IMG/VR virus record: IMGVR_UViG_3300017963_000190
Coordinates: 186,001 to 250,000 of that record
Length of the DNA: 64,000 nucleotides
Direction: 5' to 3' (one strand)
Positions 58,013 through 59,629 of the stretch are shown one piece after another; the first letter of the stretch is position 1, and each line of letters starts with the position of its first letter. The position numbers were made by a program, and so were the translations under genes. The notes beneath the pieces are model-generated. The model was not told where the DNA came from and ran no database searches. It was given only the letters and a program-made list of their open reading frames with translations.

Positions 58013-58192
58013 CTAGTATTGCCAGTATATTCGAATCACCGATGGCATTTAAGCTGCTGCGTAAGGCATTAAGTCTTGCGTGCTGTCTTTACACTACAAA
58101 CCCATAAAGAGAGGGTTTGGCGGGAATCAAACCCGCACTTCAAGATAGTTTGTCGGCAGCGTTCGAGCCGGTGAAACTGGCGAATGCTTAGT
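58013..58192 (-). ncRNA. Circularly permuted tRNA-like (YrlA-like) module 2
   Basis: Order is T arm, closed acceptor stem caaaccc/gggtttg, D arm; flanks pair into a long stem. Confidence 0.7.
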
Positions 58193-58219
58193 TTTGGAGA
58201 ATAGCTTGACGTTCAGTTC

Positions 58220-58423
58220 GGGCATCTATAAAGCCTCGACAGCCGTCTGCATCAGACACGACGACCGCGTTTACCAGATTTCGCCACCCGTACGCAAAGT
58301 AATGGGGCTGGGAGGCGCATCGCGTCTCCACTGTTTAAGCGCATCGCGTCTAAACGCCCCGATTGTACGGGGAAGGGTTCGAACCTCCAAGTCGAGTTTG
58401 GTGTGCTTCATAATCATCGCCCT
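58220..58423 (-). ncRNA. Circularly permuted tRNA-like (YrlA-like) module 1
   Basis: T arm, cccgtac/gtacggg acceptor closed by twin hairpins, D arm; flanks pair. Confidence 0.7.
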
Positions 58424-58465
58424 TGAGATTCCTGCTTAAGTTAAGCTTGTCTCCATCCTAAGCCG

Positions 58466-58699
58466 TTATGTGTTTTTTACCACCTCTCTAGTCCAGCGAA
58501 GAGCTCCAAGCTCTAGTTGGTTTTCTGATTCCTTTACATCCGCTTGCTCCCCAGCAGCAATGCGCTGGGAATAGGACAGACCATCTTTGGCCATCTGCAG
58601 CTGGCTCTTCACTTCCACCTCCAGCTGCTTGATGCGCCGGTCGAGGAAAAAGAGAGCTCGCTCTTTGGACACTGTGGGATCGATGTTTTCTGCGGACAT
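58466..58699 (-). CDS. Small helical hypothetical protein
   Basis: AGGAG RBS. Confidence 0.55.
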   Translation of the reverse strand: MSAENIDPTVSKERALFFLDRRIKQLEVEVKSQLQMAKDGLSYSQRIAAGEQADVKESENQLELGALRWTREVVKNT

Positions 58700-58700
58700 G

Positions 58701-58892
58701 TTATCTCCTGGAACTTACTCTGCACTGCCCGGCTTGATGATAGGTACCACACTCACTGCAATAACTTACTCTAAAGTCGCTTTGCTTTCGGCTTAACCGA
58801 TCAAGCTCACGTTCAAGGCGTGATACCGTTGCCTCTAGTTCTGCTACCCTTTTCTCCAGCAGTGCGCTGTTCTCTTTTTGTTGATCCGCCAT
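58701..58892 (-). CDS. Small coiled-coil/Zn-finger protein
   Basis: Heptad repeat; CSECG..H....C. Confidence 0.55.
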   Translation of the reverse strand: MADQQKENSALLEKRVAELEATVSRLERELDRLSRKQSDFRVSYCSECGTYHQAGQCRVSSRR

Positions 58893-58894
58893 AG

Positions 58895-59629
58895 CTAGCC
58901 TAGCAGATATCCGAAGACCGCTTCTCCCACCGATTTCGCTGGAGCCTCTACCGAGTTCGCTTCCTCCCTGGCGAATTTGATCGCCTTGAGCAAAGCCTGC
59001 ACCCTTTTCTGGAGCTCCTTCTTTCGCGCGGCAGTTACCGCCCCAGAGTGTTTTACAGTGACCCAGTGTCCTACGACCTGATCCTCCGTGATCAACTGCG
59101 TCTGGGCTGGGTGGTTATCTGTGGCATCATAAAGCACGATTGGCTTTTGGACCTTCTTTGTACGCGTCGTACGCTGCGCTGTGGACTTGAACAAGCTTGT
59201 TGCAGGGTCTTCCGTCCAGTCGTAGGCTGGGTCCAGCACAGGCAAGTGCTCGATGGCCGTGTTGAGATCGGTTACTTGCTTCTCCAGAAATAGCAGGTGC
59301 GTCGCCGGAACAGCCTTCAGAATGGTGACACCACCAACCACGACGTCGGCTTTGGCCTCGCAGTTTGCATGGTCCTTGGCTGCCACCACGTCGAAGTGTT
59401 CAGTCATGGATTCGGCGATATCTTGCAGAACTTGCTCAGCGTTTAGCTGGACAAGTTTCTTTTCGTCTGGCAGCTCCTCCCCTTCTTCATCGGTTTTCTC
59501 GAAGGTTTTTGCGAAGCCGTCAAAGAGCGCCGGTTTCTGGATGGACTTATAGAGCTCGGTGACGAGTTTGTACACCCGGCTCTTGATGCCTTTTTCTACT
59601 GCGATCACTTGGTGCAGCTTAGTTGCCAT
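58895..59629 (-). CDS. Conserved-looking hypothetical protein flanked by tRNA-like RNAs
   Basis: GGAG RBS; promoter TTGACA-17-TATAAA at 59703-59675; KLHQVIAVEKG...VPATHLLFLEKQ...HPAQ. Confidence 0.75.
   Translation of the reverse strand: MATKLHQVIAVEKGIKSRVYKLVTELYKSIQKPALFDGFAKTFEKTDEEGEELPDEKKLVQLNAEQVLQDIAESMTEHFDVVAAKDHANCEAKADVVVGGVTILKAVPATHLLFLEKQVTDLNTAIEHLPVLDPAYDWTEDPATSLFKSTAQRTTRTKKVQKPIVLYDATDNHPAQTQLITEDQVVGHWVTVKHSGAVTAARKKELQKRVQALLKAIKFAREEANSVEAPAKSVGEAVFGYLLG

Follow-up and report, generated by a model that had tools for sequence, protein, structure and literature searches.

A DUF7873 gene and a downstream tandem YrlA-like RNA form a conserved pair in huge phages and bacteria that probably encodes a ribonucleoprotein

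We analysed a 64,000-nt stretch of DNA (hereafter the window; positions 186,001 to 250,000 of the IMG/VR virus record IMGVR_UViG_3300017963_000190), which is part of a viral (phage) contig of about 260 kb with 33 transfer RNA (tRNA) genes, and in it a minus-strand gene for a 244-aa protein of the family DUF7873 followed by a structured RNA of about 450 nt. The RNA carries two tandem, circularly permuted tRNA-like modules resembling the bacterial Y RNA known as YrlA, and the combination of DUF7873 and tandem permuted RNA was present in the window and at some 120 further loci of phages and bacteria, which cover many phyla. The protein matched PF25283 (DUF7873) over its full length (E 8e-97, 324 bits vs a cut-off of 27), with residues 3-243 aligned to profile positions 2-242 of 244. 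The gene and the parts of the RNA are as follows, in the order in which they are read.

58895..59629, minus strand: DUF7873 gene, whose 244-aa product is the proposed partner of the RNA (full-length Pfam match)
58413..58463, minus strand: 5' leader of the RNA, repeats with a 6-nt period (GCUUA/ACUUA/AAGC type), near-identical in the related locus L056
58227..58412, minus strand: module 1, a permuted tRNA-like domain recognised by eye, in the minimum-energy fold and by the strict scan described below
58412-58405 with 58234-58227, minus strand: module 1 outer stem, UAUGAAGC/GCUUUAUA
58396-58391 with 58240-58235, minus strand: module 1 inner stem, CUCGAC/GUCGAG
58388-58372, minus strand: module 1 T arm, loop UUCGAAC
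58371-58365 with 58293-58287, minus strand: module 1 acceptor stem, 7 bp, CCCGUAC/GUACGGG
58284-58267, minus strand: module 1 D arm, GG in the loop
58266-58241, minus strand: module 1 extra hairpin
58191..58226, minus strand: inter-module linker, short repeats and a conserved UUCUCC motif (family motif (A/G)UUCUCGCUCCA)
58455-58440 with 58210-58195, minus strand: long-range duplex, 5' arm in the leader and 3' arm in the linker (inverted repeat I1, 13/16 complementary)
58014..58190, minus strand: module 2, YrlA-like, with a closing helix in three parts whose internal loops are conserved and place CUCGAAC opposite CUUAAAUGCC
within 58190-58014, minus strand: module 2 closing stems, GCCAGU/ACUGGC, CACCG/CGGUG and GCUGC/GCAGC
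58136-58120, minus strand: module 2 T arm
58119-58113 with 58103-58097, minus strand: module 2 acceptor stem, 7 bp
58094-58080, minus strand: module 2 D arm
57982..58013, minus strand: terminal hairpin, 10-bp stem, loop UGAGGGUACAAC (fold z = -2.46; stem invariant in L056)

A first-pass annotation of this DNA had read both minus-strand modules in the order T arm, loop-closed acceptor stem, D arm, and this order was confirmed by direct reading, by folding and by a strict scan (a G-UUCRA-type T arm, immediately followed by a perfect 7-bp hairpin, 2 nt and a D stem); every element of the long flanking duplexes that it had listed as closing each module was likewise found on the minus strand. The twin hairpins that it had placed on the module 1 acceptor correspond to a 71-nt insert capping this stem, whose centroid fold consists of two hairpins and which holds an exact 13-nt direct repeat (58315-58327 and 58339-58351), while module 1 of L056, a locus whose protein is 85% identical, has a plain 7-nt acceptor loop and no twin hairpins. 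One element had to be revised: the equivalent of the anticodon stem in module 2 is a short CUUG/CAAG segment pair and not a separate hairpin after the D arm. The D loop of window module 2 is AAAGACA, without GG, an exception to the family. At the 3' end, the family has a hairpin with a GAUGGAUA-type loop that is the counterpart of the terminal hairpin of the window; at bacterial loci this conserved GC-rich hairpin ends the RNA together with a U-rich tail and resembles a terminator, and at phage loci a tRNA gene often comes directly after the RNA.

The short repeats that had been noted in the linkers (AACU/AACG/CAAGC type) occur in both leader and linker, and their leader equivalents in the family are (A/G)NCUGA repeats. 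The duplex between leader and linker had a z of -4.2 in the window and a median z of -1.6 over 43 loci, with negative values in 39 of them. The leader and linker repeats are thus complementary beyond chance, which suggests that module 1 is probably carried, as module 2 is, by a long imperfect helix; alternatively, the repeats may act as single-stranded protein sites, including oligomerisation of the protein on the linker repeats. The hexamer repeats were also considered as a small coding frame for K/R-L repeats, which was rejected on in-frame stops in L030 and L054 and the lack of a conserved start.

Single-sequence folding gave z values of -0.39 for module 1 and -2.42 for module 2, which is weak evidence. 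Folding energy alone being unconvincing, the case rests on comparison with other loci. In an alignment of 39 module 2 sequences (A3), 31 pairs in five helices were 93.5% paired (a value inflated for the stems on which the scan itself selects), double changes were seen in 28 pairs, and the covariation score was 0.807, compared to 0.241 after shuffling and 0.15-0.18 with slid partners. The two closing helices of module 2, which were not used for selection, were 92.7% and 83.5% paired, and double changes occurred at 14 of their 15 pairs. A parallel result was obtained for module 1 (alignment A5, 37 sequences), in which 20 pairs were 88.2% paired, under the same inflation, with a covariation of 0.553 vs 0.158 in shuffles; slid partners reached at most 0.21 in either module. 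As RNAalifold on MAFFT alignments missed the short anticodon-like closing stems through register shifts, these stems were tested sequence by sequence, and they averaged 5.7 bp against 4.4-4.6 bp in shuffles. Between L056 and the window, compensatory changes occur in the acceptor and D stems of both modules, both of which are kept in L056, and leader, linker and terminal hairpin are almost invariant.

The linkage between gene and RNA is nearly obligate. At bacterial loci, the strict scan found at least one module 50-1400 nt downstream of DUF7873 on the same strand in 81/83 loci, usually two modules at about +95 and +250, and in some 3 Mb of bacterial sequence it gave just three other matches on the gene strand and two on the opposite strand, both of the latter belonging to one inverted RNA (L060). 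At phage loci, two modules lay just 3' of the DUF7873 gene in nearly every case. The first-pass annotation had held that homologous genes lacking adjacent permuted RNAs would speak against its proposal, and examination of the gene neighbourhood gave the opposite result. A covariance model of module 2 and its closing helices (R1) matched at full length in 82/90 loci, with one further weak match; 44 of the matched loci were outside its training set, and window module 2, whose own sequence is in that set, scored 122.8 bits. Eighty-one of the 82 lay just downstream of the gene at a fixed position on the same strand, the inverted L060 being the other, and the matched loci span huge phages, Streptomyces, Myxococcota, Planctomycetota, Abditibacteriota and Acidobacteriota. 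Searching in the other direction, with a DNA pattern derived from the RNA against viral contigs, we found DUF7873 immediately upstream of 6/6 true copies, three of which were new loci. No other neighbour was conserved when open reading frames (ORFs) of at least 100 aa within about 8 kb on either side of the gene were clustered over 131 loci; the next-largest cluster covered 18 loci, all bacterial and apparently reflecting Streptomyces synteny, and three bacterial 20-kb contexts labelled with Pfam families had mutually unrelated gene content.

Such tight linkage raises the question of whether the RNA is a cis-acting 3' element of the DUF7873 messenger RNA, serving its processing, stability or autoregulation (cf. 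the tRNA-like ends of MALAT1/mascRNA), without any role in trans. The RNA does start just 50-100 nt past the stop codon on the same strand in most loci, the terminator-like hairpin comes after the RNA and not after the gene, and no separate promoter for the RNA was detected in the scan of the window. However, in L060, a delta-proteobacterial metagenome-assembled genome (MAG), the two-module RNA (L060:11655-12008) lies 0.9-1.3 kb downstream on the strand opposite DUF7873, the sole inverted case seen, and gene and RNA are separated by two small ORFs in the window, by an inserted ORF that is HNH-like by eye in L008 and by about 1.3 kb in L068. The inverted copy and these insertions argue that the RNA is a gene of its own and not merely a 3' untranslated region, and two elaborate mimics with conserved elbow nucleotides far exceed what an end-processing signal needs, so that we regard a purely cis-acting element as very unlikely.

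DUF7873 is a large family. A profile search of 1.84 billion representative proteins returned 2709 clusters at 50% identity, and the best 150 of them were almost all 241-260 aa long with a single matched stretch and no sign of fusions. Homologues came from huge phages, Streptomyces and other Actinomycetota, Myxococcota, Abditibacteriota, Planctomycetota, Acidobacteriota and a Clostridia MAG, and among cultured phages from those of Gordonia, Arthrobacter, Rhodococcus, Pseudanabaena (cyanobacteria), Rhizobium, Vibrio, Klebsiella, Serratia and Ralstonia, with 50-60% identity across phyla. In the phage records examined, the gene is labelled "hypothetical protein" and the downstream RNA has no annotation. 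In the Gordonia phage GodonK, gene 151 (L140:4506-4634), a 42-codon reverse-strand coding sequence, overlies the RNA region and is probably spurious. The family had no match in NCBIfam, neither it nor its neighbours matched any PADLOC model at E<=1, and a PDB sequence search with the family profile gave nothing below E = 0.06.

The first-pass annotation had likened the permuted order to YrlA, and the comparison is apt: the Rfam YrlA model (RF02553) aligned to module 2 of the relatives over its full length at 28-37 bits and to their module 1 at 19.7-25 bits, both below the gathering threshold of 69 bits; in the window it gave 21.0 bits (58080-58137) and, at a tRNA junction, 22.8 bits. As in YrlA (RF02553; PMC4201824; 10.1101/312249), each of the two window modules is a circularly permuted tRNA mimic of T arm, loop-closed acceptor and D arm, closed by flanks that form the equivalent of the anticodon stem and lengthen it into a long stem with internal loops; the RNA adjoins a protein gene on the same strand, and the type occurs in phages as well (bacteria and mycobacteriophages). 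The elbow nucleotides are also those of YrlA, with GUUC.A invariant in the T loop, the D-loop GG invariant in module 1 and nearly so in module 2, and U8 in 100%. The differences from YrlA are that the partner gene is DUF7873 and not TROVE, that each RNA has two modules together with a conserved leader, linker and terminal hairpin, that the closing stem has an additional outer helix as well as a motif in an internal loop (GAUCGACCG opposite CUUAAACGCC), and that the acceptor stems are always 7 bp with discriminator-like and CCA-like loop starts. The RNA is therefore YrlA-like and yet falls short of YrlA in two defining respects, the model score and the Ro60 neighbour.

The latter point bears on another explanation, in which the RNA would be an ordinary Ro60-dependent YrlA, with Ro60 encoded elsewhere in the genome or by the host and DUF7873 a mere neighbour. 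The shared permuted architecture, the long closing stem and the full-length, sub-threshold matches fit this; our inspection covered 64 kb of the ~260-kb contig, and some hosts, including some Gordonia species, encode Rsr (PMC4201824). On the other hand, in the published YrlA survey almost every one of the best genome-wide matches had Ro60 within 4 kb on its own strand, and these alone were reported (PMC4201824), and no TROVE gene was found among window ORFs of at least 390 aa, in agreement with the earlier statement that Ro60 is missing from the window, nor in the three Pfam-labelled 20-kb contexts, the flanks of the 131 loci or the large unassigned proteins of the complete GodonK genome, which carries the module. 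Scores of 21-37 bits against a gathering score of 69, with DUF7873 as the sole invariant neighbour, likewise leave little room for this explanation, to which we give low credence.

Nor are the modules likely to be tRNA-array debris, in which the junction between tandem or decayed tRNA genes would give a merely apparent permutation. This artefact has been noted before (PMC4201824), and partial matches at such junctions do occur in the window (29161, 31177, 31252, 43372, 50994 and 59880-59931); the YrlA-like match at 59880-59935, considered as a third module, was discarded for this reason, being the junction of a degenerate tRNA-like sequence and tRNA-Ser. However, junction matches span model positions 56 to about 126, compared to 1-177 for real copies, flanks and closing helices are conserved and covary, and the bacterial loci examined have the complete RNA in chromosomal surroundings of an ordinary kind, the three that are annotated showing no evident tRNA genes, all of which makes debris extremely improbable.

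Other known RNAs were compared as well. At gathering thresholds Rfam found only tRNAs in the window, neither ARAGORN nor the Rfam tRNA model called a canonical tRNA at 58013-58425, and the GOLLD and ROOL families gave no match. GOLLD and ROOL are, like the RNA here, highly structured RNAs of several hundred nt from phages or prophages that often lie beside tRNA genes; to our knowledge they differ in having no dedicated adjacent protein gene and no tRNA-like modules. Literature on DUF7873, YrlA and the tRNA-like RNAs of phages and actinobacteria contained no account of this pair, and no Rfam family for it was found either. DUF7873 and its tandem YrlA-like RNA thus look like a real and widespread pair that we found described nowhere, related to the Ro60/Y-RNA system and separate from it.

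We then examined the ends of the acceptor stems and the first bases of their loops, counting distinct sequences (88 for module 1 and 79 for module 2). In module 1 the first loop base is A in 84% of sequences, in module 2 it is U or G, which is discriminator-like; CCA stands at the exact tRNA offset in 24/88 and 22/79 sequences (~27%) and at adjacent offsets in none; G occupies position +1 in 81-88%, no sequence lacks U8, and the base before +1 is most often U. In Mycobacterium smegmatis, a YrlA with a 7-bp acceptor stem is cut by RNase P, after which it is nibbled and receives CCA (preprint 10.1101/312249); the 7-bp stem and G+1 recur in the modules here, although the M. smegmatis RNA is linked to Rsr. 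Together, the end features and this precedent suggest that opening of the loops by processing is a live possibility.

Taken further, the modules might be permuted precursor genes, in which RNase P cuts before G+1 and the upstream piece is trimmed to or given CCA, yielding a multi-piece RNA joined by its acceptor stems, whose CCA ends would be free and possibly chargeable, with DUF7873 acting like SmpB on the ribosome or in tRNA metabolism. The constant 7-bp acceptor stems favour this as much as the end features do. However, about 73% of the sequences lack an encoded CCA, many having CUC or CUN, the loops are as short as 6 nt, there is neither an anticodon loop nor a tag-like reading frame, and the loop starts of the window modules read AAUC and UCUC instead of NCCA, so that we consider such precursors unlikely. 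The specific version in which both modules are opened by RNase P and 3' trimming into a three-piece RNA with two free, aminoacylatable CCA ends, acting with DUF7873 on the ribosome or in amino-acid transfer, appears quite unlikely; if true, it would be a second tmRNA/SmpB-like system (tmRNA, transfer-messenger RNA), common to many bacterial phyla and huge phages. The likeness to two-piece (permuted) tmRNA and SmpB lies in a T arm and acceptor 3' strand with CCA encoded before the acceptor 5' strand, in a tRNA-like domain without an anticodon arm and in a small dedicated protein gene often beside the RNA, whereas no tag reading frame, pseudoknots or SmpB homology were found here. ARAGORN found no tmRNA in the window, and the Rfam tmRNA model matched just a small third element (57909-57977), by its ends. 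The permuted tRNA genes of Cyanidioschyzon merolae share the order of the halves and the closed acceptor stem of the precursor, but they mature through a splicing endonuclease and a circular intermediate into tRNAs with an anticodon, and the modules here have no anticodon loop.

The window encodes phage functions in replication and repair (a RecA-like protein, a clamp-loader subunit, an SMC-like ATPase, DNA ligase, NUDIX and HNH endonucleases). Nearly all of its genes and tRNAs are on the plus strand, and the region 60414-57909 is a short minus-strand block with negative GC skew. As the sole minus-strand block (57909-60414) of an otherwise plus-strand stretch, it resembles an inserted cassette, with the order 141-aa ORF, degenerate tRNA-like sequence, tRNA-Ser, tRNA-Leu, DUF7873, two small ORFs, RNA and mini tRNA-like element. 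Besides the gene and the RNA, it contains the following features.

59675..59703, minus strand: promoter-like site (TTGACA and TATAAA, 17 nt apart) in the interval from tRNA-Leu to the DUF7873 start, read by eye, of putative function
58701..58892, minus strand: small ORF of 63 aa with a coiled coil and a CxxC...C tail, between protein gene and RNA; no family match above noise
58466..58699, minus strand: small ORF of 77 aa, the second insert between gene and RNA; no family match
57909..57977, minus strand: small tRNA-like element without a D stem, comprising a 7-bp acceptor, a T arm and a long anticodon-like stem whose loop reads AUUAAGG

The promoter-like site was not listed by the promoter scan because its rule demands T at position 6 of the second hexamer. 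Both small ORFs are missing from this place in L056, where the RNA comes directly after the DUF7873 stop codon. The small element at 57909-57977 matched the tmRNA model at 14 bits and had a fold z of -2.42; its homologue in L056 is a tRNA-Leu according to ARAGORN, and its membership in the RNA unit is uncertain, the element having been seen just in the window and L056. A DNA-level search of the region against a phage collection gave no match.

At the head of the cassette, the 141-aa ORF (59989-60414, minus strand) had a sub-threshold match to PTH2, a peptidyl-tRNA hydrolase family (E 0.029, 15 bits vs a cut-off of 23). The sequence at 59907-59983 (minus strand), just before tRNA-Ser(AGA), has a T arm, an acceptor-like end CCGACCA and a C-A mismatch at pair 1-72, and drew no ARAGORN call; the 94-nt tRNA-Ser(AGA) itself (59811-59904, minus strand) has 38 nt aligned to 17 model positions spanning the anticodon arm and variable region. 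Within the tRNA array of the window, weak or truncated tRNA-model matches of 29-36 bits lie at 42973-43025, 43324-43394 and 47170-47240 (plus strand), the first and last without an ARAGORN call. In L003, L023, L040 and further loci of phages, ARAGORN also reported several tRNA-Leu genes of just 74-76 nt, which lack the long variable arm that tRNA-Leu of bacteria would be expected to have.

Further observations concern individual loci. A 392-kb phage contig (L016) has an extra permuted module at 6650-6801, about 1.9 kb downstream of the main RNA (YrlA 31.6 bits; strict-scan match at 6687-6723), and a phage-encoded tmRNA upstream of DUF7873 (L016:2485-2885). In L056, an 847-aa protein encoded on the minus strand of the locus (L056:2154-4697), some 1.2 kb away from the module, matched MVP_shoulder (94 bits) and Vault_3 (35 bits), both above cut-offs, and had no counterpart in the window or any other fetched locus; the 930-aa neighbour in the window (53425-56217) was compared with this major-vault-protein homologue and showed no correspondence. 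Eukaryotic vaults contain small RNAs and a TROVE protein.

The position of the module inside phage tRNA arrays could also fit a conflict system, in which the mimics would be phage decoys against tRNA-targeting host defences or an RNA antitoxin restraining a tRNA-directed DUF7873 enzyme in the style of type III toxin-antitoxin pairs. Conservation of a histidine and of many acidic residues would be compatible with enzymatic activity, and one bacterial copy abuts a type I restriction locus: in L057 (693-9973), DUF7873 comes directly after a type I restriction-modification locus with an inserted pair of AAA_21 ATPase and RloB. However, this was one of the three Pfam-labelled bacterial contexts, the others holding ordinary metabolic genes, and no mobile-element or defence gene was among the conserved neighbours of the 131 loci. 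The modules have no anticodon loop, the usual nuclease target, the family is not in PADLOC, and a protein identity of 50-60% across phyla is unlike that of typical toxins, so that a conflict system is in our view highly improbable.

Taking these results together, we propose that the 244-aa DUF7873 protein and the ~450-nt RNA downstream of it are one conserved two-gene module and most likely a ribonucleoprotein, with the conserved stems probably binding the protein and the tRNA-like heads probably engaging tRNA-handling factors. The RNA would consist of two tandem YrlA-type domains, each an L-shaped tRNA mimic on a long stem that is formed by its flanks and holds internal-loop and repeat motifs conserved in the family. 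The analogy with Ro60 and Y RNA leads us to infer that these conserved stems and loops would be the binding site of the protein, and that the two tRNA-like heads could be presented to RNase P, to tRNA modification or CCA-adding enzymes and to exoribonucleases. The particle may thus serve the handling of tRNA or structured RNA, and huge phages would keep the module in their tRNA gene arrays, among translation-support genes.

Several findings weigh against this proposal. The T, acceptor and D stems were preselected for pairing by the scan, which inflates their percentages paired. A phage lineage of 231-245 kb (L024/L025) has an intact DUF7873 gene (4001-4723) with no RNA within 4 kb downstream; another long ORF takes the place of the RNA there. 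The AlphaFold2 model of the protein was confident (predicted local distance difference test 88, predicted template modelling score 0.71), and Foldseek searches of the PDB and BFVD with this fold gave nothing at E<=1e-3, so that the fold points to no particular RNA-binding domain. Rows for Cascade Cas7 (probability <0.2, TM ~0.13) were treated as noise, their appeal having come just from the 6-nt repeats. The family is also not basic, with a median isoelectric point of 6.4 and 17 conserved acidic vs 12 conserved basic positions, a charge no less expected of an enzyme or adaptor than of a protein that simply coats RNA.

Until now, the Y-RNA-like tRNA mimics of bacteria had been associated with one protein, Ro60; the RNA described here has this design twice over and is tightly coupled to another protein family. 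The pairing provides a first functional context for DUF7873 and accounts for an unannotated gap of 400 nt in many phage and bacterial genomes. Streptomyces genetics and phages of the SEA-PHAGES programme such as GodonK offer tractable systems for studying the purpose of tRNA mimicry, and the finding bears on the reason why large phages carry tRNA arrays.

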